Origin: Callorhinchus milii
Taxonomy: Eukaryota
Assembly (NCBI RefSeq): GCF_018977255.1
Contig: NW_024704742.1
Span: 137,950,001 to 138,014,000, forward strand
DNA: 64,000 nt
Reading direction: 5' to 3'
Shown: piece by piece, positions 15,346 to 60,443 of the stretch
Layout of the letters: each line of letters begins with the position of its first letter
How positions within the stretch are numbered: position 1 is the first letter of the stretch
Made by a program: the position numbers and the translations under genes
The notes under the pieces: model-generated
The model's database searches: none
What the model was told of the DNA's origin: nothing
What the model saw: the letters and a program-made list of their open reading frames with translations, nothing else

Positions 15346-15917
15346 TGTGTCGGCCTGGCTCAGTGGTAGCGCTATCACCTCCGAGTCAGAAAGTTGTGGG
15401 TTCAAAACCCCACATCACACTTGGAATCACACGGTATAAGCTGACACACTTATGCAGCGCTGGAAGTCGTGTTGTATTCTCAGAGACACCATCCTTCAAA
15501 TGAGACATTAAGCCGACATCCCGTCTGTGCCCTGTTCAGGTGCCTGTTAAAGAACCCATGTTACTTGTTTTTTTCCCTCAGTTCTGCCCGATAATACTCC
15601 CAGATCATTTTTTTTATATGTTGCAAGATTGATGGATGCGGTTGGTGAGCGTGCGGGTGGGGGTTGCTGTAAGTGGAGGAGGGGGTGAGGTATGTGTGGA
15701 GGTGAGGTGTGTGTGGAGGTGGGGGTGATGGTGTGTGTAGGTGGGGTGGGGTTAATGTGTGCGCGCGCGTGTGGGGTGATGGGGGGTGTGGGGGGGTAGG
15801 GTGATGTGTTTGTGTGTGTGTATTTGGTGGTGGTGGTGGGGGGGGATTTTGTGTGTGTGTGTGTGTGTAGGGTGTGATGTGTTGCCCAGCAAAGCTTTGA
15901 CGCTCTCTCCTCCTCAG

Positions 15918-16019
15918 GTCACCATTTTAAGGCCCACAAAGCGGTGCTGGCCGCCTGCAGCCAATTCTTCTGTCGCTTTTTCCAGGATTTCAGGGAGGAG
16001 CCTCTGGTGGAGATTGAAG
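15918..16019 (+). CDS. ZNF131: ZNF131 BTB-domain exon (GHHFKAHKAVLAACSQFFCRFFQDFREEPLVEIE)
   Basis: Acceptor tcctcag, donor G|gtgaga, 102 nt, phase 1-1. Translation closely matches the vertebrate ZNF131 BTB segment GHHFKAHKAVLAACSKFFYKFFQEFTQEPLVEIEG as recalled. Confidence 0.95.
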
Positions 16020-16320
16020 GTGAGATGTTCGCTCGTCAGATGATATCATCATTAATAATAATAATAATAATAATGTTACATCCCATGCCGCGCCTCTCAC
16101 ATCGGGTGGACGTCTCAAAGCGCTTCACAGAATTCACCGTAAAGAGCAGTGACTGCTCGGGTGCACATCCGTGACTGTCCAGCACCTTGGGACATCCTCC
16201 CAAAGTGAAAGCTCAGGCTCCTTCTCTGTCTGTGCAAAGTGTTCAGGACTCTCTCCTTATGAAAGCCACTAAATAAGTGCAAATGATTGTAGTTAAAGCA
16301 TTTTGAGATGCCCCAGGCTC

Positions 16321-16640
16321 TTAATAATAATAATAATCCTTGCATTTGATATAGCGCTTTTCACGTCGGGAGGACGTCCCAAAGCGCTTCACAGAATATA
16401 CTGTAAAGGGAATTGACTGTATATTTGTGGGCGAACGCGGCAGCCAATTGCGCACAGCAATGTCCCACAAACAGTCGTAGATTGAAAATGACCAATTTAT
16501 TATTGTTTTGGTTTTGGAGGTTATTATTAGGCTCTGTGTGGAGTAAGGAAACTTGCCCAAAGTTTCGCCCTCTGCCTGGATTGAACTCAGGTCTCTCACT
16601 TGCAAAGCGAGTGCTCTAACCACTGAGCTACAGGACTCCA
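16321..16640 (-). mobile_element. tRNA-derived SINE, full length (ZNF131 intron)
   Basis: Reverse complement of the family; a partial copy is at 17295-17515. Confidence 0.9.
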
Positions 16641-16644
16641 CTTC

Positions 16645-17070
16645 TCAAACTCAAGATCCTCATCCTCACCTACAAGGCCATTCACGGCCTCGCTCCCTCC
16701 TACCTCTCTGACCTACTATCCCCCCCCCGTACCCTCCGTTCCTCGGCTCCGGTCTGCTCCACATCCCCCGCCCCACCGCCCGACCATCGGTGGCCTTCAG
16801 CCTCTCAGCCCGAGGCTCTGGGACTCCATCCCCAGTGCCTTCGACGCTCCTCCCTTTCCTCCTTCAAGGCCGGTCTCAAGACCTTCTCTCTGACCTTCAG
16901 CCTTCAGCTCCGCTCTCGACTCTCTTCCCCCTCCTCGCTCCCTCCTCCCTCCCCTCACCCTGACCATTTCCCCCCCCAATGCTCGGGTCCTGACCCAACT
17001 GTACAGCGCCTTGGGACGTCCTCCCGACGTGAAAGGCGCTCTATAAAAGGAATCTTGTTGTTGTTGTTCT
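16645..17070 (+). mobile_element. L2 3' end with (TTG)n tail
   Basis: ORF2 end (KILILTYKAIHGLAPSYL) and 3' tail gggacgtcctcccgacgtgaaaggcgct...(ttg)n. Confidence 0.88.
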
Positions 17071-17542
17071 TATTCTATTCTAATAATAGGATCTCTATTC
17101 TGCTCAACGTTTACTATTTTACAATTGTTATGATTGTTAATATTGTTCTTTTTGTTACTAAGTCATCATAATTGTTACTTTTGTTGGTAAAATTGTTACG
17201 AATGTCGTTAAAATTGTTACCAATGTTGGTATAATTGTTACTATTCTAATTGTTGCTAATGTTGGTATAATTGTTACTATTATTCTACTTGTTACTATAA
17301 TAATAATAATAATAATAATCCTTGCATTTGATATAGCGCTTTCACGTCGGGAGGACGTCCCAAAGCGCTTCACAGAACACACTGTAAAGTGAATTGACTG
17401 TATATTTGTGGGGGAACGCGGCAGCCGATTGCGCACAGCAATGTCCCACAAACAGTCGTGGATTGAAAATGACCAATTTATTATTGTTTTGGGTTTTTGG
17501 AGGGATTATTATTATAAGCTCTCGTTGTTGTTCTTGTCACAG

Positions 17543-17687
17543 GGGTGAGTAACCTGGCGTTCCGTCACTTGATCGAGTTCACCTACACGGCCAGGCTGAT
17601 GGTGCTACAGGAGGAGGAGGCGAGCGATGTGTGGAAGGCGGCCGAATATTTACAGATGGAGGAGGCCATTAAAGCTCTCAACAACAG
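17543..17687 (+). CDS. ZNF131: ZNF131 BTB exon (GVSNLAFRHLIEFTYTARLMV...DVWKAAEYLQMEEAIKALNNR)
   Basis: Acceptor tcacag, donor AG|gtaatg, 145 nt, phase 1-2, in frame with the previous exon. Matches ZNF131 VSKMAFRHLIEFTYTAKLM...DVWKAAEFLQM. Confidence 0.95.
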
Positions 17688-17939
17688 GTAATGTCATCGG
17701 GAGGTGTACAAACCCCTCACTCGTACATGGACAACTGCTGGACTCTAACCAGCTAAATCCACACAGCTTGGCCGTTGATGTCGCTGTCTGGCCAGCTTTC
17801 CCGCTGCTCGTCCAGTTAGGACCACCCTATCCATTAGGGCTTTGGCTGTAGGGTTAACAGGAGCTGAGGGGGAGGATTCCCTGCCCCAGTGACTGGTCGG
17901 CCCTTCCAGGTCCTACTGCTGAGCCAGGCTGGGTTATGA

Positions 17940-18800
17940 TGCAAAAAGATTGCAGCGGGACATAGATAGGCTCGGGGAGTGGGCGAGGAGGTGGCAGATG
18001 GAATTTAATGTGGGGAAGTGTGAGGTTATTCACCCGGGTAGAAAAAATAGAAAAACAGATTATTTTCTAGAGAGGGAGAGATTAGATAGTGTTAGTGTTC
18101 AGAGGGATTTGGGTGTTCGTGTACACCGGTCTCAAAAAGTTAGTTTGCAGTGCAGCAGCAACTAAGATGGCGAACGGCAGTTAGCGTTCATTGCAAAAGG
18201 TTTAGAGTACAAGAGTAGGGAAGTCTTACTGCAACTTTATAGGGCTTTGGTGAGACCGCACCGAGAGTATTGTGTGCAGTTTTGGTCCTTATTTAAAAAA
18301 GGACACACTTGCCCTCGAGGGGGTGCAGCGTAGATTCACTCGGTTAGTTCCTGGGATGAGGGGACTGACCTATGAGAGGCTGAATAAACTGGGGCTGTAT
18401 TCTCCAGAGTACAGAAGAATTAGGGGAGATCTTATTGAAACATATAAGATTCTTAAAGAGCTGATAAAGTAGACACTGAGGGTCTGTTTCCCCGGGAGGA
18501 GAATCTATAACCAGGGGTCACAGTCTGAAAATTAAGGGTCAGCCTTTTAGAACAGAGTTGAGAAAACATTTCTTCACTCAGAGGGTAGTGAACTTATGGA
18601 ATCCACTACCCCAGAAGGCTGTAGATGTCAGTCCTTGAACATCTTCAAGGCTGAGACTGATAGATTTTTAAAAAAACAGAGGGTTTAGGGGATATGGGGA
18701 GAGGGCGGGTAATTAGAGTTAGGTCTGAAGATCAGCCATGATCTTATCGAATGGCGGGGCACAGGCTCGAGGGGCTGAATGGCCTACTCCTGCTCCTGTC
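17940..18800 (+). mobile_element. CR1 LINE 3' fragment
   Basis: QRDIDRLGEWARRWQMEFNVGKCEVIH and RRIRGDLIETYKI, plus the CR1 3' UTR GATCAGCCATGATC...GAATGGCCTACTCCTGCTCCT. Confidence 0.92.
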
Positions 18801-19082
18801 TCAGTGTATCTGACAGCGATGATCTGGGTTTACTTTTCAATCCCATTTACACTGTTACACACCTCTGCTCCCCTCTCATCGTCTTCTCATCAACCCCTGG
18901 TAACAGCCTGAGTCTGTCTAAATACATCTAAACTCAAGGCCTCTTGTTCTACTGTCTCAACTGACAGCATACGGGACTCATCCCTTCCACTTACACACCT
19001 CTGGGACGTCCCCTCTCAGCTCTGTCTCTCAACCCTGAACCAGCCTGCTCTAATCATACACCTCACTGCTCTCCCTCCTAAC

Positions 19083-19350
19083 CTGGGATCAGCCTCACTG
19101 CTCTCCTCTGTCTCTAACACTGGGATCAGCCTCACTGCTCTCCTCTGTCTCTAACACTGGGATCAGCCTCACTGCTCTCCTCTGTCTCTAACACTGGGAT
19201 CAGCCTCACTGCTCTCCTCTGTCTCTAACACTGGGATCAGCCTCACTGCTCTCCTCTATCTCTAACCCTGGGATCAGCCTCGCTGCTCTCCTCTGGCTCT
19301 GACACTGGGATCAGCCTCGCTGCTCTCCTCTGTCTGTAACACTGGGATCA
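19083..19350 (+). repeat. 37-bp intronic minisatellite
   Basis: Unit ctgggatcagcctcactgctctcctctgtctctaaca, about 7 copies. Confidence 0.95.
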
Positions 19351-19567
19351 GTCTGGCTGCTCTCTCTGCATAGTCTTTAGCGCACGGGTGGCCCTTACGT
19401 TGTGATCAGAGCTGTCAGAAAAGGTGCTGCCTGACCAGACGCTATACGGCCTGAGAATGGTGTCTGGGGATCTGAACTCAGCTGTTTACCTGTTTGTTGC
19501 CGCCTCACACTGTCTTCGCGCTGTTCCCAATGTCCGCCTGACCGTCTCTGCTCCCGTTTTGTCCCAG

Positions 19568-19862
19568 GAACAAAGCTTCCTCTCCGGCCAGCAGTGCCGA
19601 GGGGGCCGGGGGAAGGAAAGCCAAGAAGCGGACCATCGCCGAGACGTCCAACGTGATCACGGAGACGCTGCCGTCCATCCAGGAGCCGGAGACGCTGGAG
19701 ATCGAGCAGGACGGCGCCGTGTTTGCGGCCCAGATCGTGGAGATCGAGGCAGCCCCCAGCGTGGGGGATGCCGGAGAGGGGCGGCCCGGGGCCGAGGAGA
19801 CGGCCAAGGCCTGCCGCGAGGTGGAGGAGGACAGGCCGGAGGGGGCAGCCGAGGCGGGAGAG
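19568..19862 (+). CDS. ZNF131: ZNF131 linker exon (NKASS...KAKKRTIAETSNVITETLPS...EAGE)
   Basis: Acceptor tcccag, phase 2 start. Motif AKKRTIAETSNVITETLPS matches ZNF131 AKKRKIAETSNVITESLPS. Donor GAG|gtcagc is inferred from the phase-0 start of the next exon. Confidence 0.85.
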
Positions 19863-20860
19863 GTCAGCAAAGTCACTGCAGCCTCTTCAGAGCTGCCAAA
19901 CACCAACATGAGACAAAAGTCAATCCCAATTCAAATTTATACACCGTCTCAGAGTCCTGGATGGGCACCTGAGCTAATGATAATAATACTAATAATCCTT
20001 GCGATGGATACAGCGCCTTATCATGTTGTTGAGACGTCTCACAAAGCGCTTCACAGGATATACTGTAAAGCAGAACAAAAACAGAAGTCGCTGGGAACCC
20101 TCAGCAGGTCAGGCAGCATCCATGGAGAAAGGAAAGTGACTCAATGTTTCAGGTCCACGACCCTTCGTCAGAACAACCCCGCCCTTTGTTTTGCATCATT
20201 AACACCTCTTTAACCCATCATCCCCCGTCCTCTACCCCATTGTCTCCTTTGTCTTCCTTGCCCTGACTCCCCCCTCCCTGTTAGCCCTTAAAAGCCTCTC
20301 CCCCTCCAGAGTGCCCCAGTTCTGACGAAGGGTCGTGGACCCGAAACGTTGACTCGTTTTCCTCTCTCCACAGATGCCGCCTGACCTGCTGAGGGCTCCC
20401 AGCGACTTGGGTTTTTGTTTCAGATTTTCAGCATCTGCAGTATTTTGTGTTTTGTTTGTACTGTAAAGTGAATTGACTGTATATTTTGTGGGTGGAATGC
20501 TGCAGCCAATTGCGCACAGCAGCGTCCCACAAACAGTCTTGGATTTTTTTTTTGGAGGGATCATTACCCCCGGAAAGCGATCCACCAATCAACTAACAAC
20601 CAGGTTCCTACTCACTGCTGATAAACAGAGGCGTGTGGAGTAAGGAAACTTGCCCAACATTTCGTCCTGCCAGGAATCAAACCCGGGTCATCTTGCTTAC
20701 GAGGCAAACGCACTAACCACTACTCTATGGGACTCTACTTACACATGTGTCTAACTCGCCACTCCTGATAACTCGTCACCCTCGTCAGTGATGAGGTATC
20801 AGGAGTATAGACTATGTTATCAGTATGTTAGTATGATAAGTGTTACTGTCTGCTCTGTAG

Positions 20861-21305
20861 GGGGAGTCGGTGGGCTCTGCATTGGCCCTGTTGGCTGACA
20901 TCACTAGCAAGTACCAGCAGGACGAGAGGGAGCGGGAGCTGGAGAAGGACGGGGAGGCGGGGGCTGCCGTGCGGGAGGTGGGGGCGGAGGCGGGGGTCCA
21001 TGTGGTCGAGGTCCTGGCTCAGGGAGACAAGCTGTTTTGCTGTGAGAAGTGCAGCCGCTCGTTCAGACTTTACTACCACTTTAAGGAGCACCTGAAGGTT
21101 CACTCGGGTGAGATCTACGCCTGTCACCTGTGTAACAAGCGCTACACAAGGGAGAGCGCCTGGAAACAGCACCTGGCCTGGCACCAGGAGGAGGAGGCCG
21201 GCAGCAAGAAGCCTCGCTGTATGCGCAAGGTCCACGTCTGCCAGTACTGCCAGAAGCAGTTTGACCACTTTGGACACTTTAAAGAGCATCTCAGGAAACA
21301 CACGG
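20861..21305 (+). CDS. ZNF131: ZNF131 exon with three C2H2 zinc fingers
   Basis: Acceptor ctgtag, donor G|gtaaga, 445 nt. Contains SALALLADITSKY, CEKCSRSFRLYYHFKEH, CNKRYTRESAWKQH and HVCQYCQKQFDHFGHFKEHLRKHT, characteristic of ZNF131. Confidence 0.96.
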
Positions 21306-22526
21306 GTAAGACACCCTGCTCCAGGTGCCGCTATGCACCCCGCCACCAGGTGGCAGCACCTCACCAGGTAAGTGGCTTCTTCCAAGCCGGATCCCGAGGC
21401 GGCCATTTTTTTCTCCTCGGAGGAGGACGATTTTTGGTTTGTGAATTTTAGCCCCGAAAATCAGGATTGAAGGTTTCTTTCTGGTTATATGTTTCCTGGT
21501 GCTGACCTGCGCAGGAATGGCCACCCAACCCCCCACCACATTGTCCTTTGGGTGAGATGGTAAACCTCACTCCCTGTCTGTCCCTGTTCAGGTGGGCGTT
21601 AAAGATCGTGTGGCACTTAATGGGAAGGAGAAGGGAGTTTCTCTTTCGGTGTCCTGGCTGACAATCCGCTAACTAAAATTGATCGTTCATTTCACGGATA
21701 TTTCTGAGATGTTGCTGTCATGTTTGCCTAAAAATACAATTTATATTTACTGTCTATAGTGACTTTCAAATAGGAAGAACGTCTCAAAGCGCTTAAAATA
21801 CACAGTCACTCCACTTTACAGTTAATCCTGCGAAGAGCTTTGAGACGTCCTCCTGACTTGAAAGGTGTTGTGTCAAACGTAAGGATTATTATGATTAATT
21901 TATAGGGGAGATTGTCAACCAGGAAACCAGGAGAAACTCCCTTCTCTGAGATTCACCCAGTAACTCCCTCTATATATAGCACAGACACACACACACCACA
22001 TGTACAGGCAGAGACGAACAAACACATGCGTGAGCAGATGGTTCCAGCCACGCCCAGTCCTGTCCGGATGTACAGATCGATTTCAAGCTCCTCACTCTCT
22101 CATGTACAAATCACTTCCTGCCCTGGCACCTCCCTACCTCTCTAACCTTACATCTTACTGTTTCACCTGCTGCCTCTGCTCGGCTGTTCTTGATCACCTC
22201 CGCTCCACCATCGGCAGCCGAGCTTTCAGCCACTAACGCCCTGAAACAGTGGAATTCTCTGCCTCAATCCCTCTCCTTTCCCATCTTCAGATAACATCCC
22301 TGTGTGAAGGGCTGTATATAAATTCAAGTTATTTTCATCGCACACAAAATCCACAGTCAATATGCTTTACTTTGAAACGTCTTGATGACGTGATAAGGCA
22401 CTGTATCAAATGCAAAGACTAGTTGATGGCGGAGGCGGTGGCTGAGGGAAGCACTGTGTGTGACTGTGTCCTGCCAGGCCTGGGGAAACGATGAACTGAT
22501 GCCCTTTTTTTCCCCTCTTGGATCAG

Positions 22527-22657
22527 GAGAGAAACCCTTCGAGTGTCCGAACTGCCACGAGCGGTTTGCGAGGAACAGCACACTGAAATGTCACCTGGTG
22601 GCTTGTCGCACTGGCGTGGGCGCCAAGAAAGGCCGCAAGAAGCTGTACGAGTGCCAG
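22527..22657 (+). CDS. ZNF131: ZNF131 zinc-finger exon (GEKPFECPNCHERFARNSTLKCHL...KKGRKKLYECQ)
   Basis: Acceptor atcag, donor CAG|gtacag, 131 nt, phase 1-0. Near identity to recalled ZNF131. Confidence 0.96.
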
Positions 22658-22974
22658 GTACAGGCGCAACCCACCCTCGCTCACACCAGCCCCCACCCTT
22701 TGGAACTCCATCCCACATTCCCTCCGCCTGGATCCTTCCCCAAGGCCCATCTCAAGACCCTCCTCTTTGACCGAGCCTTTGATCACCCTCCCTACCCTGA
22801 ACCTAATCCCCAGCTCGGGTCCAAATCTCTGACTGTCCAGCGCCTTGGGACTTCCTCCTGACATGAAAGGCGCCGTGTAAATGTAATATGTTGTTGTTGT
22901 TGAGCTCACAGTCCAGGCTGAGGCTCCAGTAATGGAGTGAGCGCCGCATTGTCAGTGAGTGATGCTGTCCTTCG

Positions 22975-23303
22975 GATAATAATAATAATAATAAGCCTTG
23001 CATTTAATATTGCGCTTTTCACATCTTCTCGATGTCTCAAAGCGCTTCACAGAATATACTGTAAAGTGAATTGACTGTATATTTGTGGGCGAACGCGGCA
23101 GTCAATTGCGCACAGCAATGTCCCACAAACAGTCGTGGATTGAAAATGACCAATTTATTATTGTTTTGGGTTTTGGAGGGATTATTATTAGGCTCTGTGT
23201 GGAGTGAGGAAACTTGCCCAAGGTTTCGCCCTCTGCCTGGAATTGAACTCAGGTCTCTCGCTTGCAAAGCGAGTGCTCTAACCACTGAGCTGCAGGACTC
23301 CAC
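22975..23303 (-). mobile_element. tRNA-derived SINE, full length (ZNF131 intron)
   Basis: Reverse complement of the family. Confidence 0.9.
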
Positions 23304-24448
23304 ATGTTAGAGATCCCTCACGGAACTATTGGAAAAGAGAATGGAGTTTCTCTCTCTCCTGGTGCCCTGGCTGACAATGTCCACTTGCTTGTTCACTTGG
23401 TGGCTGTTTGTGGGGCATTCCTGATATTTTGGTGCTTTGTTGGCGAAATGTAAAATTTCGTTCAAATTTAATTCGTCAAAAGTTTTGCGGCAGCTGATTT
23501 GCTCACAGCGAAGTCCCACAAACAGCCGTGAAGGAACGAGGGATTTTATAATAAATAATAATAATAATCCTTGCATTTGATATAGCACCGTATCACGTGG
23601 TTGAGACGTCTCAAAGCGCTTCACAGAATATACTGTAAAGTGAATTGAAGGTATATTTTTGTAGGTGAAATGCGGCAGCCAATTGCACATAGTTGTGGAT
23701 TGAGGGATCAAATTATTATTATTTTTTAAATTTGAAGGGATTATTATCCCCGGAAAAGCGATCCGTCAATCGACCAACAGCTACTTACTGTTAGGTAAAC
23801 AGAGGTGTGTGGAGTAAGGAAACTTGCCTATAGTTTCGCCCTGTCCGGGAATCTTTTAACGTCCACCTGAACAGGGCTCAGACGGGGAGTTCGGTTTAAC
23901 CCCTCACCCGAAGGATGGGTTTCTGACAATGCGGCGTTCTCTCCCCCCAGCGCTGTGCATCAGTCTGGTCTGTGAGCTCATTAAGACCTCGAACCCACAA
24001 TGTTCTGACTCGGAGTCGAGAGCGCGAGGTGCCGAGCCAGGCTGACGCACAACAAACTCTTTCAGGGATTGTGAAGCAGTGGGAGTGACAACAACAACAA
24101 CTTGCATTTACACAGCGTCCCTCACGCAGGCAGCGTCCCAGAGCTTGGCAGTGGCGGAACACGATTCAGAGCTGGGGGAGGGGGTGGCGACCGTAGGCAC
24201 GGTGGAAGAGGAAGGTCTTCAGGCGTGACCTGAAGATGGGGAAGGAAGGGGCAAGGCGGCGGGATAGAGGAAGAGTGTTCCAGAGTTTCGGGGCCTAGTG
24301 GCTGAAAGCGTGGCCACCGATGGTGGAATGGAGGGGACGAGAGACATGCAGGGAGTCGGTCGAGCAGATAGTGGGTTGGGGAGGAAGCTCGGAGAGGGAG
24401 GGAGGTGACCCAGGTGGGGTTTGACTGATTGCTGTCTGCTCTCGGCAG

Positions 24449-24748
24449 GTTTGCTGCAGTGTCTTCCCGAGCTGGGACCAGTTCAAGAGCCACCTGGCGG
24501 TGCACACGGGGGCCAAGCCCAACCATTGCACTTTGTGTGACATGTGGTTCATGCGCCCGGGCGAACTGCGGCAGCACCTGAGGGAGGTGCACGGCCTGGC
24601 ACAGCTCGAGCCAGAGGCTGAACCCGAACCAGAGCCAGAGCCAGAGCCGGAGACAGACCCCGAGCTCTCCCACATCGTGGTCCCCATGGAGCTGATCGAA
24701 GCTGAAGCTGTGGCCGGCGAGACCGTCATCGAGCAGGTCACCGTGTAG
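24449..24748 (+). CDS. ZNF131: ZNF131 last coding exon (VCCSVFPSWDQFKSHL...CTLCDMWF...EP repeat...VTV*)
   Basis: Acceptor cggcag, phase 0, two zinc fingers matching ZNF131 SWDQFKDHL and KPNHCTLCDLWF, then TAG at 24746-24748. Confidence 0.9.
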   Translation, partial: VCCSVFPSWDQFKSHLAVHTGAKPNHCTLCDMWFMRPGELRQHLREVHGLAQLEPEAEPEPEPEPEPETDPELSHIVVPMELIEAEAVAGETVIEQVTV

Positions 24749-30720: not shown

Positions 30721-31884
30721 AATCACTAACTGTAGGGCCTCACATTATGTTTATGTTGTCGGAAAATCCTGAGAGAAGAGAGGTGTCAGGTGGTGTGTGG
30801 AGGCTTTGGAAGGAGATGGTTTGAGTCGGGGCTGTGTTTCTTTTCTGTCAACAACAAAATGACGTGTAAAGCGCCTTTCACATCCCGAGTCGCTGGACAG
30901 TCAGAGTTTCTGACCCGAGCTGGGGGTCAGGATCGGGGAGGGGGCAGGGCAGGGGGGAAGCAGGTTGATCGAAAGCACCGTCAAAGAGGAGGGTCTTGAG
31001 ATGGGTATTGAAGGAGGCAACAAAGCGGAGGGACTGAGGGATGGAGTTCCAGAAGGGGGGGTTTAGAGTGGTGGAAGGCCCATACGCCAATAGTGGGGTG
31101 AGCGAGGCGAGGGCCGTGAATCAGGCCGGAGCCCGCTGAGGGGAGAGAGCGAGCAGGATGGTAGGGGGGAGCAAGACCATGGAGGGTCTTGAAGACGAGG
31201 ACCAGGATCTTGAACTGTATCCTCTGTGTGATGGGAAGCCAGAGGAGTCGGGCAAGGATGGGGGTGATAGGTTCACGGAGCCTGGTGAGGGAGAGGACAT
31301 GGGCTGCAGAGTTCTGGATGATGTGTGGAGGGAGGAGTTGGGGAGGCCGACAAACAGGGAGTTTGCATAGTCGAGGGTCGATGTAATGAAAGCTTATCCG
31401 AGGGTTTCTGCAGTCTATGGTGTGAGCCAATGGCAGACCCGGGCGATGTTGAGGAGGTGGGGGAAGGCAGAGCGGGTCATGGCACAAATGTGGGGTAGAA
31501 AGGATAGTTGAGGGTCGAACAAGACGCCAAGGTTCTGGACTGGCTCAGTGAGGTGAAGTGTGCAACCATGGATGGTGATGCTGTCAGCGCCTGAGGTGTG
31601 AAGGCGACGGGTTTGACGATTTGATAAGGTGCAGTCAGATCTGCTGATGGACCGTTATGTTCGATTTAAGCCTCGTGCCTTCAGCAGCACATACCTGAGC
31701 TTTAAGGGAGTGGAGGTGACTGGTGTACAATGGTGACATATGTGAATAGGAGACAGTTCTGAGCACCAGACGTTGCAGAATCACAAGATGTCATTACTTC
31801 CTCCAGCTGAATGACAAGAGGAAACAGCAATCTTTATCCATACACCACAACGTGGAACGTTCAATAGCCACAGTCCATTGCTTT
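30720..31884 (+). repeat. Segment duplicated in inverted orientation at 57813-59032
   Basis: Unique flanks and the embedded L2 fragment match in reverse complement. 29459-29511 also matches about 59487-59539. Confidence 0.95.
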
Positions 31885-31895
31885 TAATTTGGAGA

Positions 31896-31952: not shown

Positions 31953-32013
31953 ATGCTGCCTTTCTGCTTTTGGTTTTCCAGCGTCCTCCTGTGGGGCACA
32001 ACGCAGACTTCTG
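31953..32013 (+). CDS. Siglec-15-like receptor copy 1, signal-peptide exon (MLPFCFWFSSVLLWGTTQTS)
   Basis: ATG, 20 mostly hydrophobic codons, phase-1 donor G|gtatgt. Paralog at 46730. Phase matches the V exon at 33851. Confidence 0.8.
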
Positions 32014-33354
32014 GTATGTACTCCCCATCCTCACATTGCTGTACCCCATCACCCCCATCCTCGCCCGACTGCACTGTATTCTCTTCTTTGCTTGTCAGCC
32101 TCCCCAACTCCTCCAACACAGGCTGCAGATCATCCAGAACTCTGCAGCCCGTGTCCTCTCACAGACTGGGCTCAGCAACCCTGTCACCCCCATCCTTCTC
32201 ATCACATAGAGGATACAGTTCAAGATCCCGGTCCTCACCTTCAAAGCCCTCCATGGCCTTGCTCCACCCTACCTCTGCAACCTCCTGACCCCCCTACCAT
32301 TCTGCCCACTCGCTACCCTCAGCGGGCTCCAGTCTGCTTCACGTCCCCCGCCTCACTCGCCCCACCCTTAGCGGACATGGCTTTCTGCCACTCTGCTCCA
32401 ACCCTCTGGACTCCATTGCGCAGTCCTTCTGCCTCGTCCCCTCCCTCACCACCATCAAGATCCATCTCAAGATCCTCCTCTTAAACCCTGCTGTTGATCT
32501 CTCTGCTCCCTCCCCTGCCCTCCACACCCCCGAATCCCAACCCCCAACTCGGGTGGAATCTCTGTCTGTCCAGAGCCTTGGGAAATCCTCCTGACGTGAA
32601 AGGCGCATTACACATGTCATTTTGTTGTTGTTATTCCGGTCTGTAGGTGCGAGGTGGGTGGGGGGGGGGGGTGTGGGGGGGGCTGGTGGGTGGGGGGGTT
32701 TGGGTGGGGGGGGGAGTTCGGAGATGTCACAGCAATGTGATGAGTTGCTATATCAAATGCAAGGATTATTATATATTATAACCGGTTACAAGGTGACACT
32801 TAACAATGCAGCCCACAGTTTGTGACGGTCTCCAGACCGGGTCCTGAGCCAACCAAGTCCACAATACTCCACAGCGCTGTTGATGACAGCACAGTCCAAC
32901 TTGGCTCATTGGCAGGACCTGGAAGGGCCGACCAGTCACTGGGGGCAGAGAATCCTCCCGCTCAGCTCCTGGTAACCCTGCAGCCAAAGCCCTCATGGTT
33001 AAGGTGACCCTACCTGGACAATTATAATAATAATCCTGGCATGTGATATAGAAAGCTGGACAGTTAGCGCTCTCAATGGCAAGCGATGTTGGTTTTAGAT
33101 GGTTGGACTCCAGCAGTTACCCCAAAGTACACTCTGGGGTCCCCAAGCCTTAGCTCTTGCCAACCTGTGCCTAATACTCTCCAGAATTAGCTAAGCTGGA
33201 TGTGTCCCTGCAAACTTGTCCTCCACAAATAATTATCTCCTTCTCTCTTAAAAGTTGATATGGAATCGGCTTCCCTCAGCCTTTCAGGCAATGCATTCCA
33301 GATCCCAACAACTCGCTGTGTGGAAACATTTCTCCTCCCCTCCTCTCAGTTCCT

Positions 33355-33810
33355 TTGTGTGTGTTGGGTGTCTGTGTATGTTTGTGTGTGTTGGGTGTCT
33401 GTGTATGTTTGTGTGTGTTGGGTGTCTGTGTATGTTTGTGTGTGTTGGGTGTCTGTGTATGTTTGTGTGTGTTGGGTGTCTGTGTATGTTTGTGTGTGTT
33501 GGGTGTCTGTGTATGTTTGTGTGTGTTGGGTGTCTGTGTATGTTTGTGTGTGTTGGGTGTCTGTGTATGTTTGTGTGTGTTGGGTGTCTGTGTGTGTTTG
33601 TGTGTGTTGGGTGTCTGTGTATGTTTGTGTGTGTTGGGTGTCTGTGTATGTTTGTGTGTGTTGGGTGTCTGTGTATGTTTGTGTGTGTTGGGTGTCTGTG
33701 TATGTTTGTGTGTGTTGGGTGTCTGTGTATGTTTGTGTGTGTTGGGTGTCTGTGTGTGTTTGTGTGTGTTGGGTGTCTGTGTATGTTTGTGTGTTGGGTG
33801 TCTGTGTGTC
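33355..33810 (+). repeat. 27-bp GT-rich minisatellite upstream of V exon A
   Basis: Unit gtgtgtgttgggtgtctgtgtatgttt, about 17 copies; a shorter paralog is at about 49170-49380. Confidence 0.95.
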
Positions 33811-33850
33811 TGTGTGTATGTTTGGTTTCAATGTGTCTCTGCCCACACAG

Positions 33851-34240
33851 TATTCTCGCACAGCGGATGGACAATGATCGTCCCGGACGAGGTGACGGCT
33901 GAGAACGGGGCGACAGCCATTATGTCCCTCTGGTTCTCTCACCCAAATAGCCATTACAGCGGTGACATCACGATCATATGGAGGAGAGATAACAAGGACC
34001 TGATCAGCTTTCAGTGCTCCGGGGACAGCGCAGCTCAGGGTCGGCCCCGCAAGTGTGAGACCCGGAAACCGAAGCCCGGGGGCGAGCGGTACCGGCTGCT
34101 GGGGGACCCCTGGCATAACAACGCCGCACTGATGATAGACCCCGTGAGCAGTGAGGACCAGGGGGGGTATCTGTGCCGAGTGGAGCTTAACATCGATGGG
34201 CAACAGTTTGATTCCCCCAACACCGAGCTGTCAGTGACAG
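33851..34240 (+). CDS. Siglec-15-like V-set Ig exon A, copy 1
   Basis: Acceptor cacacag, donor G|gtgagg, 390 nt, phase 1-1, open. WTMIVPDEVTAENG...FSHP.HYSG.IT.IWR...FQC...C.T...RYRLLGDP..N...YLCRVE aligns with the Siglec-15 V domain (WSMQVPPEVSAEAG...FTHP.HYDG...RFRLLGNP..N...YFCRVE), including the F-strand Arg. Confidence 0.88.
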
Positions 34241-34496
34241 GTGAGGAGACCGGTGTCTGTGCTGCTCTGTGACACAACAACCCGTCGCTGACCCCCCCCC
34301 CCCCACCCCCCCAAACCCCTACAATTGGCTCCTCTTCAGATATCTAACCAATTCCCTCCTGAAACCTAACCGGGATCCTCCCTCAACCCCCACTCCCAGC
34401 CGGGCATCTCACAACGAATCATAGAATCTTACAGCACAGAAGGAGGCCATTCAGCCCATCGAGCCTGTGCCACCTTTTTGAAAGAACTGCCAACAA

Positions 34497-35390
34497 ATCC
34501 CACTCCCCCGCTCTTACCCCAACTGGTCCCACTCCCCCGTACTTACCCCAACTAGTCCCACTCCCCCCCCCACCCCAACTAGTCCCACTCCTCCGCTCTT
34601 ACCCCAACTAGTCCCACTCCCCCGCTCTTACCCCAACTAGTCCCACTCCCCCGCTCTTACCCCAACTAGTCCCACTCCCCCGCTCTTACCCCAACTGGTC
34701 CCACTCCCCCGCTCTTACCCCAACTAGTCCCACTCCCCCGCTCTTACCCCAACTGGTCCCACTCCCCCGCTCTTACCCCAACTAGTCCCACTCCCCCCTC
34801 TTACCCCAACTAGTCCCACTCCCCCGCTCTTACCCCAACTAGTCCCACTCCCCCGCTCTTACCCCAACTAGTCCCACTCCCCCGCTCTTACCCCAACTAG
34901 TCCCACTCCCCCCGCTCTTACCCCAACTAGTTCCACTCCCCCGCTCTTACCCCAACTTGTCCCAGTCTCCAATTCTTACCCAAACTAGTCCCATTCCCCT
35001 GCTCTTACCCCAACTAGTCCCACTCCCCCACTCTTACCCCAACTAGTCCCACTCCCCCCACTCTTACCCCAACTAGTCCCACTCCCTCACTCTTACCCCA
35101 ACTAGTCCCACTCCCCCGCTCTTACCCCAACTAGTCCCACTGCCTCGCTCTTACCCCAACTAGTCCCACTGCCCCCTCTTACCCCAATTAGTCCCACTAC
35201 CTCGTTCTTACCCCAACTAGTCCCACTCCCCCGCTCTTACCCAAACTCGTCCCACTCCCCAGCTCTTACCCAAACTAGTCCCACTCCCTCACTCTTCCTC
35301 CAACTAATCCCACTCCCCCGCTCTTATCCGAACTAGTCACACTCTCCCCTCTCTTACCACAACTGATCCCACTCCCCCACTCTTACCCCA
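34497..35390 (+). repeat. 29-bp minisatellite (cccactcccccgctcttaccccaactagt)n inside a CR1 3' end
   Basis: Period of 29 measured directly; about 30 units by length. Confidence 0.95.
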
Positions 35391-37539
35391 CAGCCCTGCA
35401 CATTTTTCCTGTTTAAGTACGTATCCAATTCCCTTTTGAAAGCTATTATCGAATCTCCTTCCTTCACCCTTTCAGGCCGTGTGTTCCAGACCATAACAAC
35501 TCTATTAAATCTCCCCTTAACCTTCTCTGCTTTAAGGAGAATAATCCCAACTTCTCTATTCTCCCCACATCCCTGGTATTCTTGTGAAGCTCCTCTGCAC
35601 CCTCACCAGGCACTGACATCCTTCCTAAAGTCTGGTGCCCACAATTAATACTAATAATAATAATCCTGGCACACTGTGCACAATTGGCTGCCGCAAAATA
35701 CACAGTTAATTCACTTTACAGCATATTCAGTGATGGGCTTTGAGATGTGATAATACTCATATTAAATGCAAGGATTATTATTTGATGTCTTCGAGACGTC
35801 TCAAAACGCTTCACAGAATATACTGTAAAGTGAATTGACTCCAACTGAGGCCATTAGTAAAGATTCAAGATAACTTCCTTACTTTTATACTCTGTGCCTC
35901 TGTTTAAGAGGTGACGGTAAACACAGTCGAAGAGGAACGTCTTGAGGTGTGGTCTGAAAATGGGGAAGGGGGGGCCAGGCGGAGAGATTGAGGGAGAGAT
36001 CCCAAAGTTTCTGGGGGTAGTGGCTGAAAGCACGGCCACCGATGGCAGATCTGTAACCGTGGGACACTCCAGGCTCACAGTCCAGGCTGGTGCCCCAGGG
36101 TAGTGCTGGGGGAGCCCTGCCATGTCAGAGATGCCGTCAGTCGGGTCAGATGTTAAGCTGAGGGCCTGTCTGTGGAGGTTAAAGTTCCCGTGAAGCTGCT
36201 CAATAAGAGACTGGAGCTTAGAAACCGAACTCCCAGCCCTGACAGTGACTCCCGGGGAAGCTGTTTGAGACGCTTTGACATTGAACAGGAAAGTTTGACA
36301 TCTTTATAAAAGTCACCTCTAAACCGTTCAACCGTGTGTCCCGGCCACTCCCTCGGCTCAGCGGGTACCGACCTGCTTCACCTCCTCCGCCCTCTCCTCT
36401 CCCCCATCGGTGATCGGCTTTCAGCCATTCTGCCCCCGGCTCCATGGAAATCCATCCCAAAGCCCCTCCGCCTCACCCATTCACCTTAAAACATTCCCCC
36501 CGACCCCATCCCTGAACGTTGCTGTATCAATGTGAACTGTATTAGAGCAGCTGCTGAGAAACTAATAATCATGTCTGTCTGTCTGTCTGTCTGTGTATAT
36601 GTTTGTCCATCTCTTTGTGTATCTGTATATATGTCTGTGTACAAGTATCTTTGTGTGCGTACTCCGTGTGTGTCAGTGTATGTAACTGCAGGTGTCTCTG
36701 TCTGTATATCTGTGTGTGTTTCTATCTGTTGAATGTGTATCTCTGTATCTGTTTGTGTCTGTGTATGTGTGTCTGTGTCTCTCTGTATGTTCTGTGTCTG
36801 CGTATGTCTGTGTATATTCTTTGTGTGTATCTCTATGTTTATGTATGTGTCTGTGCGTGTGTTTGTGTGTGTGTCTATATGTTTGTGTGTGTTTGTGTCT
36901 GTGTGCACGTCTGTATGTTGTATGTGCGATTCTGCATTCATGTGTGTTTGTATGTGCGTCTATGTGTGTGCGCATGTCAGTTGGTGTCTGTGGGTGGGTG
37001 TGCAGTTATGCATGTGGGTGGGTGTGCATGCGGGTGGGTGGGCATGCGTGTGGGTGAGCCTGTATGCGGGTGGATGGGCGTGACTGGTGTTCGTGCGGGT
37101 AGGTGGGGGTGCAGTTGTGTGGGTGTGCGCTGTTGTGCGTATGTGTGGATGCAAGTGTCTGCGTGTGTGGGTGTTCGTGTGTATGGATGTTTGTGTGTGT
37201 GAGTGTTCGTGTGGGTGTGCGCGTATGTGCACATGTGTGCGTGTGTGTGTGGGTGCGCATGCGCGCGTGCGTATGTGGGTGTCTGTGCGTGGGCGTTTGT
37301 GCACATGTGTGCATGTGTGCATGGGCATGTGTGTGGGTGCGTGTGTGTGCTTGTGTGCACATGAATGAGGGTGCGTGTGCGCGTGTGGGTGTGTGTGTGT
37401 GTTTGTGCATGTGGGTGGGTGTGCGAGTGTGTGTGTGTGTGGGTGTTCGTATGGGTGTGCATGTGTGTGGATGTATGTGCCTGTGTGCGTGTGGCTGTGT
37501 GTGTTGTGAGTGTGTGACTCTGTGTGTTTCTTCTCTGAG

Positions 37540-37893
37540 GTGTTGACACAAACCACCGCCTGGTGATGGGGACGGTGGGAGAATCGGTGATGTTGCTTTG
37601 CCCACTGCCCTCTAATGGCCCTAAATATAAACTTGTCAACGTCACGTGGGTGAGGAAGGAGCCGTACAGCCACCTGGTGACCTTCAGACAGGAGGGTGGT
37701 TCCTGGAATAGGACGGAGGGTGATGAGCGGTGTGAGCTGAGGGGGAGCGCGGCTGATGGGGACATCACACTGACAGTGAGCCGCCTGGTAACAGAGGACA
37801 ACGGCATCTACCTGTGTCTCGTGGAGGCTGAGAAGGAGAACAAGAGACTCGTGATCCAGCGGGAGATCAGGCTCCAGGTTCAGAGCTCTCCAG
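37540..37893 (+). CDS. Second V-set Ig exon B, copy 1
   Basis: Acceptor ctctgag, donor G|gtaaga, 354 nt, phase 1-1. V-set hallmarks [11 protein letters not shown] and EDNGIYLC. Confidence 0.88.
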
Positions 37894-38402
37894 GTAAGAT
37901 CCCTCTGTCTACATCCCTGACCCCAAACAACAGCAACTTGTTACAGTTACACAGCGCTTTTCACTTCAGGAGGACGTCCCGAGGCGCTGGACAGTTTAGA
38001 GTTTGCATCCTGGGGCTGGAGCCAAGAGGGGTGGAGAGCAAGGGGAATGAGGGTGGAGGGTGACTGGAGCCACGGTCAGAGAGGAAGGTCTTGAGACAGG
38101 TCTTGAAGGTTGCAAAGGAGACGGAGAGGTGCAGGGGATCCGGGACGGAATTCCAGAGGGTGGGGCAGAAAGGCTTAAGGCCTGACTGCCAATGGTGGAG
38201 CGGACAGGATGGGGGACATGGAACAAACTGGTGCTGCTGAGCGGAGTGAATGGACAATGCTCCAGTGGGGGTGTGAGCACCAGCACAGACAGGAGGGGGA
38301 GAGAGAACAGAGTAGACAGCTTCAGTGGGGAGCGAACACCAGCACAGACACGATGGGAAGGTTTCTTGGGTAGAATAACTCTGTGTTTCTTTATACCCGA
38401 AG

Positions 38403-38495
38403 GTCTGGCTGCCATCTACATTCTGTGGCTGATACCGGCGGTTAAATGTCTCTTTCTGTTGGTGATGGGGATCATTCTCGTCTGTAACACAAGAG
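38403..38495 (+). CDS. Transmembrane exon with intramembrane Lys (GLAAIYILWLIPAVKCLFLLVMGIILVCNTR)
   Basis: Acceptor tttctttatacccgaag, donor G|gtttgt, 93 nt, phase 1-1. Hydrophobic span with a central K. Confidence 0.8.
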
Positions 38496-38529
38496 GTTTG
38501 TCAATTCTTTGCTGTTTGCAGTTTAAAAT

Positions 38530-39440
38530 ACAGAAAGGAGGATAATACTCCTATTTTTAAGAAAGCAAATAAAAGTGTACCAGGAAACTACAGACCAGTA
38601 CGTTTGATGCCCATTGTGGATAAAATTATTAAGGAGACTCTTTTTAAGGATAAAATCATGGAGCATCTGGACAGAAATCATATCATAAATGATAGCCAAT
38701 ATGGGTTCATGAAGGGAAGGTCTTGCCAATATAATTTCTTTGAGAGTGTGACAAGGGAGCTGGATAAGGGTAAGGCTGTGAATGCTGTATATCTGGATCT
38801 CAGTAAGGCCTTTGATCAATTTCTCTTGAGAGGCTGGTATTGAAAGTAAAGAATGCTCTGTGGCAGGAAATAAAGCAAACCAGATGTTGGAAGGGATCCA
38901 AAGATGAATAGCAGCCGAAATAGTGGGGGATTCCCTGTCACTGTATAAATCATTGTCGAGTCTTAGAATATTGGGTACAGTTCTGGTCACCGCAGTACAC
39001 AAAGGGAATGGGAGACTGTACAGAGGAGGGCAACCGGAATGATTAAGATAATGGAGGATGATGAGGAGTGACTAAGTAAATTGGGTAAGTTCATGCTGAC
39101 AAATCAAAGATTGAGAGGAGATATGATTGATGTCTATAAGATTCCAAAGGGGCTCGACAGTGAGGAACATGACAGACTGCTTCAGGTGTCCAGAATAGTA
39201 AAACCAAAGAGCAGGGGCTGCGATTGAAGGGATCAATTCAGAACAAATCTACAGAAACACTGTTTCAGTGAGTGAAAAGTAAACCTGTGGAACAGGAAGT
39301 GTTGGTTTCTTCAAACACAGATTAAATAATTTTCTTTTGGGAAATAACATTATAGGATATAATACATAAATAGTTGAGGACATATATGCATTCCAGAAAG
39401 GGGGAAGGCAAACGAGGCATTTCATCGTCTAGATTTCTTA
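38530..39440 (+). mobile_element. CR1 RT fragment, degenerate
   Basis: SQYGFMKGRSC...VYLDLSKAFD. Confidence 0.85.
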
Positions 39441-39746
39441 TGTTATAATAATAATGACAATAATCCTTGCATTTGGTATAGTGCTTTTCACGCTACTTGT
39501 GGGCGAACCCGGCAGCCAATTGCGCAATTGCATGTTCTTAATGTGCTTAACAAATGCAGTGAAAATTCACTTGGACATTACCACAGAGCTATAGAGGTCT
39601 ATTGTGAAGGGAGGCTTGAGGAGTTGGGTCTTCAGTGCCCTGAGATGCTACGCTGTGTGGAGGACCCTATATCAGTGCAAGTTGTTGTTTTTGACTGGAG
39701 CTGAGAAGGTTAATGCGTCAGTAAATGCTTTTTCCTTTCTCCTAAG

Positions 39747-39790
39747 ATCGTACAAGATCACAAGAGCTTCAGGTGAAGGAGAACATCTGA
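39747..39790 (+). CDS. Short cytoplasmic-tail exon (DRTRSQELQVKENI*)
   Basis: Strong acceptor tttcctttctcctaag, phase 1, TGA at 39788-39790. An internal donor CAG|gtgaag is an alternative. Confidence 0.55.
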
Positions 39791-46729: not shown

Positions 46730-46790
46730 ATGCTGCCTCACTGTGTTTGGTTTGCCAGCGTCCTCCTGTGGGGCACAACACAGACTAAGG
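46730..46790 (+). pseudogene. Receptor copy 2, signal-peptide exon (MLPHCVWFASVLLWGTTQTK)
   Basis: 61 nt, donor G|gtacgt, clear paralog of 31953-32013. Confidence 0.8.
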
Positions 46791-50126: not shown

Positions 50127-50518
50127 TATTCTCGCACAGCGGATGGACAATGATCGTCCCGGACGAGGTGACGGCTGAGAACGGGGCGACAGCCATTATG
50201 TCCCTCTGGTTCTCTCACCCAATTAGCCATTACAGCGGTGACATCACGATCATATGGAAGAGAGATAACAAGGACCTGATCAGCTTTCAGTGCTCCGGGG
50301 ACAGCGCAGCTCAGGGTCGGCCCCGCAAGTGTGAGACCCGGAAACCGAAGCCCGGGGGCGAGCGGTACCGGCTGCTGGGGACCCCTGGCATAACAACGCC
50401 GCACTGATGATAGACCCCGTGAGCAGTGAGGACCAGGGGGGGTATCTGTGCCGAGTGGAGCTTAACATCGATCGGCAACGGTTTAATTCCCCCATCACCA
50501 CCGAGCTGTCAGTGACAG
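50127..50518 (+). pseudogene. Receptor copy 2, V exon A', frameshifted
   Basis: Near-identical to 33851-34240 but with a 1-nt loss in a G run (ctgctgggg|acccc, about 50377-50380), giving a TGA at 50405-50407. A homopolymer sequencing error cannot be excluded. Confidence 0.8.
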
Positions 50519-60089: not shown

Positions 60090-60443
60090 CTGGAGAGCTC
60101 TGAACCTGGAGCCTGATCTCCCGCTGGATCACGAGTCTCTTGTTCTCCTTCTCAGCCTCCACGAGACACAGGTGGGTGCCGTTGTCCTCTGTTACCAGGC
60201 GGCTCACTGTCAGTGTGATGTTCCCATCAGCCGCGCTCCCCCTCAGCTCACACCGCTCATCACCCTCCGTCCTATTCCAGGAACCACCCTCCTGTCTGAA
60301 GGTCACCAGGTGGCTGTACGGCTCCTTCCTCACCCACGTGACGTTGACAAGTTTATATTTAGGGCCATTAGAGGGCAGTGGGCAAAGCAACATCACCGAT
60401 TCTCCCACCGTCCCCATCACCAGGCGGTGGTTTGTGTCAACAC
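60090..60443 (-). pseudogene. Receptor copy 2, V exon B', inverted
   Basis: Reverse complement of 37540-37893 with intact splice sites and three substitutions (D>N, I>T, Y>H in the DxGxYxC motif). No intact transmembrane exon was recognised downstream. Confidence 0.8.

Follow-up and report, generated by a model that had tools for sequence, protein, structure and literature searches.

What kind of receptor gene lies beside ZNF131 in the cartilaginous fish Callorhinchus milii, how is it related to Siglec-15, and is it still a working gene? These questions are raised by a stretch of 64,000 nucleotides (nt) of contig NW_024704742.1 (positions 137,950,001 to 138,014,000 of the forward strand; hereafter the window, all coordinates being counted from its first letter). 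A reading of this DNA from its letters alone, which we call the sequence-only reading, had proposed an intact, activating, Siglec-15-like receptor with two V-set domains. We find in the window an unannotated C. milii gene, real and apparently intact, for a type I membrane receptor, and its V-V architecture is real. The agreement of its exon plan, motifs and homologies is far more than chance would produce. Our account is built on exon structure, domain homologies, the conservation of key residues and of a transmembrane lysine, the distribution of the family and synteny, all of which were observed here.

The five-exon gene and its V-B domain

The gene occupies positions 31953-39790 of the + strand. 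Its five exons, re-derived from the raw sequence, follow the GT-AG rule with 10 of 10 splice dinucleotides canonical and every junction in phase 1, and they join in frame as had been proposed, giving 313 codons with no internal stop. The TGA stop at 39788-39790 is followed directly by TAA. The product is a type I membrane protein of 313 residues that consists, in order, of a hydrophobic leader, a first V domain (V-A), a second V domain (V-B), a transmembrane (TM) segment with Lys283, and a tail free of tyrosine. The exons are as follows.

31953..32013, + strand: exon 1, start codon and hydrophobic leader (MLPFCFWFSSVLLWGTTQTS); 61 nt, ending in phase 1
33851..34240, + strand: exon 2, V-A, a Siglec-15-like V-set domain, residues 21-150 (homology, profiles, AlphaFold)
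37540..37893, + strand: exon 3, V-B, a second V-set domain, residues 151-268 (Pfam V-set, V-B clade, V-B profile)
38403..38495, + strand: exon 4, stalk and TM helix (about residues 272-296) with Lys283 at its center (shared TM motif)
39747..39790, + strand: exon 5, 14-residue tail (DRTRSQELQVKENI) and TGA stop, preceded by a polypyrimidine tract and AG acceptor

The start codon in exon 1 has an A at -3, the exon ends at a GTATGT donor, and the leader can be aligned with the leaders of the elasmobranch receptors described below. The skate ortholog locus (L001) displays the same five-exon plan of leader, V-A, V-B, TM and tail.

That the second domain is also of the V-set type, as the sequence-only reading had it, is borne out by Pfam and by a predicted nine-strand sandwich. 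The protein matches the Pfam V-set model with E = 2.5e-25, the best stretch being residues 157-264 and covering 105 of the 109 model positions. V-B contains Cys171-Cys243, W187, N-glycosylation sites at N184 and N207 and an extra Cys215, and it carries the motif VTW(M/V)RK(E/D)PYxH(I/L)VTFR that is common to the family. Phylogenetically it lies within the clade of elasmobranch V-B domains (99*), and it scores 91.5 bits with the family V-B profile and 42 bits or less with the profiles of other groups. When the V-B profile is compared with solved structures, the fourth domain of pIgR (D4) is the best match (62 bits, E = 3e-16) and the V domain of Siglec-15 the second (50.9 bits). An origin of V-B as an internal duplicate of V-A was considered but is not supported: the two domains are about 32% identical, but V-B scores 38 bits with the Siglec-15 V profile and 39 bits with the butyrophilin-type V profile, and the ranking of solved structures does not support such an origin either. 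The extra Cys215 (DERCELRG) stands where the elasmobranchs have Tyr (NRYEL) and is shared by the C. milii paralog P0001. Two ectodomain thiols, those of Cys129 in V-A and of Cys215, are potentially free.

An AlphaFold2 model made with a 15-sequence family alignment has a mean predicted local distance difference test score of 80 and a predicted template modeling score of 0.72. It contains sandwiches of at least nine strands at residues 20-150 and 157-265 and a helix at residues 270-312; the strand count and order fit V-type folds, including C' and C'', with V-A following the A-to-G order, and the B and F strands of V-A are predicted with confidence. The best Foldseek matches of the whole model are tandem-V proteins (a single-chain variable fragment, pIgR, CD226 and CD33). 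Foldseek was set aside as a discriminator of families, since it recovers the tandem-V fold only and does not separate them.

The TM segment includes IPAVK283CLFLL, with the central lysine that the sequence-only reading had pointed out. The motif (I/L)Pxx(L/V/M)KxLxL(L/F)VM is common to the window gene and the activating family members P0014, P0005, P0032 and P0033; activating receptors of Rhinoraja, Pristis and Narcine keep it, as does C. milii LOC103174418, whose TM segment (MLWLMPAAKCLFLLVIGIVLLCKTQD) is 67% identical to that of the window gene by hand count. The window TM can likewise be aligned with the TM of Siglec-15 from frog, bird and lungfish. The cytoplasmic end of 17-18 residues, 14 of them encoded by the tail exon, has no tyrosine, and because of this it holds no immunoreceptor tyrosine-based inhibitory, activation or switch motif (ITIM, ITAM or ITSM), in keeping with the short tail without ITIM described earlier. 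The last 16 residues of LOC103174418 (...CKTQDSRRL...) begin like the window tail (DSRR), a likeness by sequence rather than by mapped exon boundary. Neither a C2-like exon, with C2-containing C. milii relatives as queries, nor an exon for an ITIM tail was found in the 64-kb window, and the idea of a hidden exon of either kind was dropped.

V-A, its family and the Siglec-15 lineage

In a whole-protein search of PDB sequences the top match is human Siglec-15 (7zoz; E = 5.9e-16, residues 25-137), with pIgR and CD33 next at about 1e-9. A V-A profile of four sequences matches 7zoz at 82.7 bits (E = 1.7e-22), an E-value margin of 11 orders over the next solved structure, JAML (1e-11), with CD33 and Siglec-5/-8 at 1e-8 to 1e-9 (CD33 at 39.7 bits). 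When group profiles are run against the window V-A, osteichthyan Siglec-15 gives 97.8 bits, the elasmobranch V-A 82, a second chondrichthyan family (see below) 68, other Siglecs 44, and the remaining groups 44 or less; the osteichthyan Siglec-15 profile therefore fits the window V-A better than the elasmobranch one does. When the V-A profile was used for an exhaustive HMMER search, the elasmobranch family came first by best single-domain score (113-225 bits). A second tier at 56-90 bits holds the Siglec-15 of mammals, birds, frog, coelacanth, lungfish, sturgeon and teleosts together with the second chondrichthyan family, and sialoadhesin-, MAG/CD22- and CD33-like Siglecs and TIM proteins follow at about 30-38 bits. 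In a careful maximum-likelihood tree, one branch parts all Siglec-15-like V domains from the other Siglecs and the lamprey group (95/73).

The Siglec-15 likeness claimed for V-A is thereby upheld by the top structural match, the Siglec-15 profile and the tree. The sequence-only reading had named grouping with CD300, TREM or pIgR-like receptors as the case that would speak against it; pIgR scores about 36 bits with the V-A profile, compared with 82.7 for Siglec-15, and the names checked for 30 of the 150 top-ranked V-A matches include one pIgR-like label and no CD300 or TREM. The exact placement of V-A within this assemblage was attempted with approximately unbiased (AU) tests, which left three rival clades unrejected: with the elasmobranch V-A (p = 0.31), with the second family (0.29) and with osteichthyan Siglec-15 (0.26). 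A clade of the window V-A and the elasmobranch V-A was not recovered in the tree, though its p-AU is the 0.31 just given.

The structure of human Siglec-15 contains two disulfides, C64-C142 and C95-C104; R143 forms a salt bridge with sialic acid, W44 and Y154 provide CH-pi contacts, and Y87 is a hydrogen-bond donor (PMC10264397). The remaining ligand contacts are backbone carbonyls. V-A presents W27, Leu47, Cys76-Cys89, Cys129-Arg130 (CRVE) and F140. The F-strand CRVE arginine on which the sequence-only reading had relied is in place: Arg130, in YLC129-R130-VE, aligns with human YFCRVE and is the counterpart of the essential F-strand arginine, human R143. The C'-C'' pair Cys76 and Cys89 (FQC...RKCE) is the counterpart of the extra human disulfide C95-C104, and both columns are at least 90% invariant in the family alignment. 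At the position of human Y154 the aromatic character is retained as Phe (F140). V-A further shares with Siglec-15 the signature GW-M-VP, FxHP..Y.G.IT.IWR, RY/FRLLG(D/N)P and YxCRVE. The family varies at the key arginine position (CNIL in P0004, CHV in P0010 and P0022, CSL in P0014).

A word-based search of 5.8 billion proteins, followed by the exhaustive HMMER search and name look-ups, revealed a family of related receptors across the chondrichthyans, which upholds the proposal that the V-V form is lineage-specific. The word-based search retrieved V-V proteins of Pristiophorus and Pristis that are 32-38% identical. The family is present in the sharks Heterodontus, Mustelus, Heptranchias, Pristiophorus, Hemiscyllium and Chiloscyllium and in the rays and skates Narcine, Rhinoraja, Leucoraja, Hemitrygon, Amblyraja and Pristis. 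Examples are Rhinoraja longicauda LOC144592311 (XP_078252965), Leucoraja erinacea LOC129695285, Pristis LOC127572469/127572805, the Pristiophorus 'cell surface A33 antigen-like' protein and the Hemiscyllium 'Siglec-15 isoform X1', all of them automated RefSeq models. Most members are labeled 'uncharacterized', others 'A33 antigen-like', 'CD33-like', 'sodium channel beta-2-like' or 'pIgR-like', and one 'Siglec-15 isoform X1'. Automated gene models, inconsistently named, are all that represents the family, and for the C. milii gene there is no model of the whole. In the searchable literature we found no description of such receptors from cartilaginous fish, whether of the Siglec-15-like V-V form or paired, and nothing relevant on Siglecs in these fish.

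The family contains both activating and inhibitory forms. P0014, P0005, P0032, P0033 and the V-A-only P0022 combine the TM lysine motif with a short tail, as does the window gene. In the inhibitory P0009, P0167, P0017, P0012, P0003, P0015 and P0026 the TM bears no charge, and the tail is long, carries several SCTYAx(I/L) motifs and ends in a (V/I)xYAAV ITIM. In the Rhinoraja and Leucoraja loci there is one exon per module, tandemly repeated.

The second chondrichthyan family is represented in C. milii by LOC103174418 (XP_042192165, formerly 'PREDICTED Siglec-15'), with the order V1-V2-C2-TM(K)-short tail, and by LOC103188797, with V1(x3)-V2-C2-TM-ITIM. The C2 and TM of both align with the Siglec-15 of lungfish, frog, bird and mammal, and the V2 of this family is the sister clade of V-B (support 89). 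Among the features of Siglec-15, the window gene has the V domain, the F-strand Arg, the C'-C'' pair and the TM Lys, and lacks the C2 domain and the B-F disulfide. The description 'Siglec-15-like' therefore holds for V-A but not in the sense that the gene is simply 'the' Siglec-15, as it appears to be a C2-less side branch beside the C. milii V-V-C2-TM(K) genes. Read most economically, these comparisons would make the window gene a branch that lacks C2 within a Siglec-15-derived cluster of the chondrichthyans, and not a one-to-one ortholog of tetrapod Siglec-15.

Multiplication of Siglec-15-type V domains is also seen elsewhere. The lungfish Protopterus has a 'Siglec-15 X2' with the order V-V-C2-TM(K), in which both V domains are of Siglec-15 type, and an 1128-residue protein with seven tandem Siglec-15-type V domains (P0006 and P0019 are the Protopterus proteins); a two-V form is found in the salamander Pleurodeles (P0027). 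The nearest non-gnathostome relatives of the Siglec-15-type V are lamprey proteins labeled 'Siglec-12' (Petromyzon P0047).

Functional state of the receptor

We lean toward the reading that the window gene encodes a working activating receptor of a chondrichthyan-specific, Siglec-15-derived V-A/V-B family, one that probably still binds sialic acid. We infer the co-splicing of the exons and the expression, surface transport, glycan binding, adaptor and cell type of the product. The leader would be cleaved from the receptor, and the membrane-distal V-A would offer the ligand face of Siglec-15, with Arg130 on strand F directed to the sialic-acid carboxylate and W27 and F140 making aromatic contacts. 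V-B would act as a stalk-like second V domain in the place of C2, spacing V-A from the membrane. In the middle of the TM segment Lys283 would pair with the TM Asp of a dimeric ITAM or YxxM adaptor of the DAP12/DAP10/FcR-gamma type, coupling to which had been predicted earlier, and the short tyrosine-free tail would be unable to signal alone. Ligand engagement would lead to activation of myeloid or lymphoid cells, with ITIM-tailed relatives of the same family or cluster, such as C. milii LOC103188797, providing the counterbalance.

A number of observations weigh against this reading. In V-A the B-strand Cys that corresponds to human C64 is Leu47 (SLWF vs PCTF), and consequently the core B-F disulfide is impossible and Cys129 is unpaired, whereas the disulfide Cys is kept in every Siglec-15 ortholog inspected and in nearly all family members. 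The equivalent of human Y87 has also been lost. The sequence-only reading did not mention Leu47, and its term 'intact' is accurate for the reading frame but not for V-A. The B-strand Cys is absent from both V-A copies in the window, so that Leu47 is no sequencing slip and the change is older than the duplication. The word-based search of the 5.8-billion-protein collection found no protein matching the whole gene, and from C. milii it retrieved only a V-B-only Ensembl model of 172 residues from a paralog (94% identical); the gene therefore draws no transcript-based support from it. A search of the literature on DAP12 (TYROBP) in cartilaginous fish found nothing relevant. Glycan binding by zebrafish Siglec-15 is weak (PMC7226832).

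The further receptor copies in the window add to these points, as copy 1 is the sole complete unit there and the neighboring copy is frameshifted and fragmentary.

46730..46790, + strand: leader exon of copy 2 (MLPHCVWFASVLLWGTTQTK); 61 nt, phase 1, GT donor
50127..50518, + strand: copy 2 counterpart of exon 2 (V-A), about 98.5% identical
60090..60443, - strand: V-B exon, a further or rearranged copy; 3 of 354 nt differ from exon 3

Compared with exon 2, the V-A exon of copy 2 has lost 1 bp from a run of G, gained 3 bp and undergone five substitutions, and it encodes Leu for the B-strand Cys; the G-run deletion causes a frameshift and is possibly an assembly error. The V-B exon at 60090-60443 sits between N gaps, one of its changes turns the Tyr of the YxC motif into His, and no TM or tail exon for this copy was found in the window. 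All eight substitutions between the V exons of the copies are nonsynonymous (8N:0S): N>I, R>K, G>R, Q>R and D>N in V-A, and D>N, I>T and Y>H in V-B. There is no sign here of purifying selection since the duplication. The pattern would suit selection that is relaxed or diversifying, but it falls short of significance (P about 0.1), and so small a count does not separate neutrality from diversifying selection. The ratio of nonsynonymous to synonymous change between copies was set aside as an arbiter, as 8N:0S represents too few changes.

It is unlikely, in our judgment, that the gene is a nonfunctional or decaying recent tandem copy in a birth-and-death cluster, one whose V-A disulfide was lost and which is no longer expressed or folded. 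Such decay would accommodate Leu47 in place of the canonical Cys, the extra unpaired Cys215 in V-B, the frameshifted neighbor without TM and tail exons, the inverted V-B exon, the 8N:0S pattern and the missing annotation of the gene as a whole. What argues against decay is that 313 codons remain open over five exons, that the splice sites are canonical throughout, and that every core residue except the B-strand Cys is intact, the other Ig core residues, Arg130, the C'-C'' pair and the TM Lys all having been kept. The Cys-to-Leu change predates the duplication and no further decay has followed it in copy 1. The Narcine members P0013 and P0028 likewise lack the B-strand Cys (LPFHF), yet they are modeled as full receptors. 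Ig domains can fold without a disulfide, and AlphaFold is confident in the B and F strands. Another version of events, to which we give little credence, keeps the receptor functional and activating but has V-A recognizing a protein or other ligand in place of sialic acid. Several Siglec-like receptors keep the fold but recognize other ligands. Loss of the Y87 equivalent and of the B-F disulfide that braces the sheet would suit a changed ligand, as would the variation of the family at the key arginine position, the nonsynonymous-only divergence typical of ligand-driven diversification, and the precedent of zebrafish Siglec-15 as a poor glycan binder (PMC7226832). Nevertheless, V-A has retained W27, the CRVE arginine Arg130 and, where human Siglec-15 has Y154, an aromatic side chain. 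These are the side-chain contacts described for the human protein, in which the remainder are backbone carbonyls.

Finally, the five exons might not belong to one transcript, the V-A and V-B exons being spliced elsewhere or encoding a secreted product, and the TM and tail exons belonging to another unit. The cluster is rearranged and contains assembly gaps, which leaves room for such an arrangement, but the exon order, phases and domain order are the same as in the skate genes, the window has yielded no alternative C2 or ITIM-tail exon, and the TM and tail exons lie only 0.5 and 1.9 kb past V-B with good splice sites. We regard separate transcripts as very improbable.

The ZNF131 locus and comparison with known receptors

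The upstream neighbor of the receptor gene and the repeats in and around it are listed here.

15878..24745, + strand: ZNF131 (ZBTB35), BTB and zinc-finger exons; 100% identical to A0A4W3GQ24
33354..33826, no strand: minisatellite in intron 1, 27-bp unit x 17.6 copies, stopping about 25 nt short of the acceptor of exon 2
34490..35390, no strand: minisatellite in intron 2, 29-bp unit x 31 copies, also in copy 2
13.7-14.2 kb - strand, 28.9-29.5 kb - strand, 29.8-30.5 kb + strand: interspersed element
41.2-41.7 kb + strand, 45.7-46.15 kb + strand, 58.2-58.6 kb + strand: interspersed element, continued

ZNF131 is found in pieces encoding the BTB domain (about 15.9 and 17.5 kb), a linker (19.4-19.85 kb) and zinc fingers (20.87-21.3, 22.5 and 24.45-24.75 kb). 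The complete identity of its exons with C. milii ZNF131 (A0A4W3GQ24) marks the window as DNA of this species. ZNF131 ends near 24.7 kb, and the receptor gene begins at 31.95 kb on the same strand. In Leucoraja, LOC129695285 (12.104-12.136 Mb) shares the strand of ZNF131 (12.161-12.177 Mb) and is found about 25 kb downstream of it. ZNF131 is thus followed by a V-V gene in both Leucoraja and the window, and therefore the locus is orthologous across approximately the whole of the Chondrichthyes. In the frog Gastrophryne carolinensis (CM051234.1), SIGLEC15 at 629.6 Mb and ZNF131 at 600.7 Mb (L004 and L005) have the same orientation and are 29 Mb apart on one chromosome. This may be what is left of an old linkage, one that chondrichthyans show in tight form. 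Tight synteny with SIGLEC15 was looked for, and a loose linkage in this one frog was what was found; the human SIGLEC15 and ZNF131 are on chromosomes 18 and 5. Database look-ups for the genomic positions of the C. milii and Heptranchias paralogs returned no record.

The minisatellites of introns 1 and 2 were duplicated along with the gene and recur at 49.1-49.4 kb and 50.77-52.4 kb. Intron 2 also contains about 1 kb of (GT)-rich low-complexity sequence (36.56-37.53 kb) that reaches the exon 3 acceptor. In intron 4, positions 38520-38830 of the + strand hold an open reading frame (ORF) fragment with reverse-transcriptase-like motifs (PIFKK..NYRPV.L..., YGFMKGRSC, AVYLDLSKAFD) that, judged by eye, looks like the remnant of a long interspersed nuclear element. 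The leader of copy 2 is 84% identical to that of copy 1, as against 98.5% for the V-A exon, a contrast that suggests a mosaic or gene conversion. An inverted block comprises, on the - strand, the V-B exon and then a 94-99% copy (57810-59032) of the 5' flank of the gene (30720-31887); it lies between N gaps and possibly represents either a real inversion or a mis-oriented contig. The interspersed element, with the ORF ...FDP(E/Q)LSFLPHI...F.HLRNIARLRHYLTP.AAETLVHAFITSRLDY.NSLL.GLP..., flanks the receptor copies. Near-identical blocks at 52.6-53.9 kb and 62.3-63.6 kb, containing masked N runs, a long tandem array and ORFs with ...SLCCPLPGTDSLCC..., have identical ORF translation starts and are another duplicated segment.

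Siglec-15, a drug target in bone disease and cancer, has been regarded as an ancient and conserved Siglec whose role is purely activating. Should the chondrichthyan genes descend from it, then the oldest jawed-vertebrate lineage added a second V domain, dropped C2 and produced ITIM-bearing counterparts. We put forward, tentatively and with the balance of probability against it as a whole, the model that cartilaginous fishes turned the Siglec-15 lineage into a fast-evolving tandem cluster of paired receptors, with V-V-C2 forms and C2-less V-V forms, in which the window gene is an activating member that functions without its canonical V disulfide. If this model is true, the chondrichthyan cluster would be an independent invention of a counterpart to the mammalian CD33-related Siglecs. 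Given descent from Siglec-15, the family would also offer a natural series for asking what in the Siglec-15 V domain sialoglycan binding depends on (Arg130, the C'-C'' loop and the core disulfide) and how old the pairing of TM Lys and adaptor is. For annotation, the gain is one unannotated gene and a mislabeled family beside ZNF131. Receptors of this kind are known, and the window gene, an ordinary type of gene, adds a new architectural variant to them, of moderate relevance to comparative immunology and glycobiology.

Among known systems, the elasmobranch V-A/V-B receptors are like the window gene in domain order, exon plan, orthologous V-B, ZNF131 neighbor and activating TM Lys, but they are only 27-38% identical to it, and nearly all of them have the B-strand Cys. 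The second family (LOC103174418/LOC103188797, Mobula 'Siglec-15' and Heptranchias 'Siglec-12-like') resembles the window family in its Siglec-15-like V1, its V-B-related V2 and its activating/inhibitory pairs, and its activating form has a nearly identical TM Lys segment and a short tail. It differs from the window gene in possessing a Siglec-15-type C2 between V2 and TM and a V1 without the C'-C'' pair. Siglec-15 itself is generally regarded as a conserved activating Siglec. It (human Q6ZMC9, 7ZOZ, and the orthologs from teleosts to mammals) shares with the window gene the V signature, the Arg, the C'-C'' pair, the TM Lys and the lack of an ITIM. It differs in its C2 second domain, its B-strand Cys and Y87, and its much longer tail, and the window gene is part of a tandem cluster with inhibitory relatives. 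V domains of the pIgR/CD300 type are represented by pIgR D4, the nearest solved match of V-B, whereas V-A is not pIgR-like and the gene has neither the architecture nor the function of pIgR. In the paired CD33-related Siglecs of mammals, such as Siglec-5/-14 and Siglec-11/-16, ectodomains that are related to one another carry an ITIM tail in some members and a charged, DAP12-recruiting TM in others, within a fast-evolving tandem cluster. The window V-A is not CD33-like (39.7 vs 82.7 bits), its architecture is V-V rather than V-C2n, and its origin is independent, but the logic of pairing is the same as in the chondrichthyan family.

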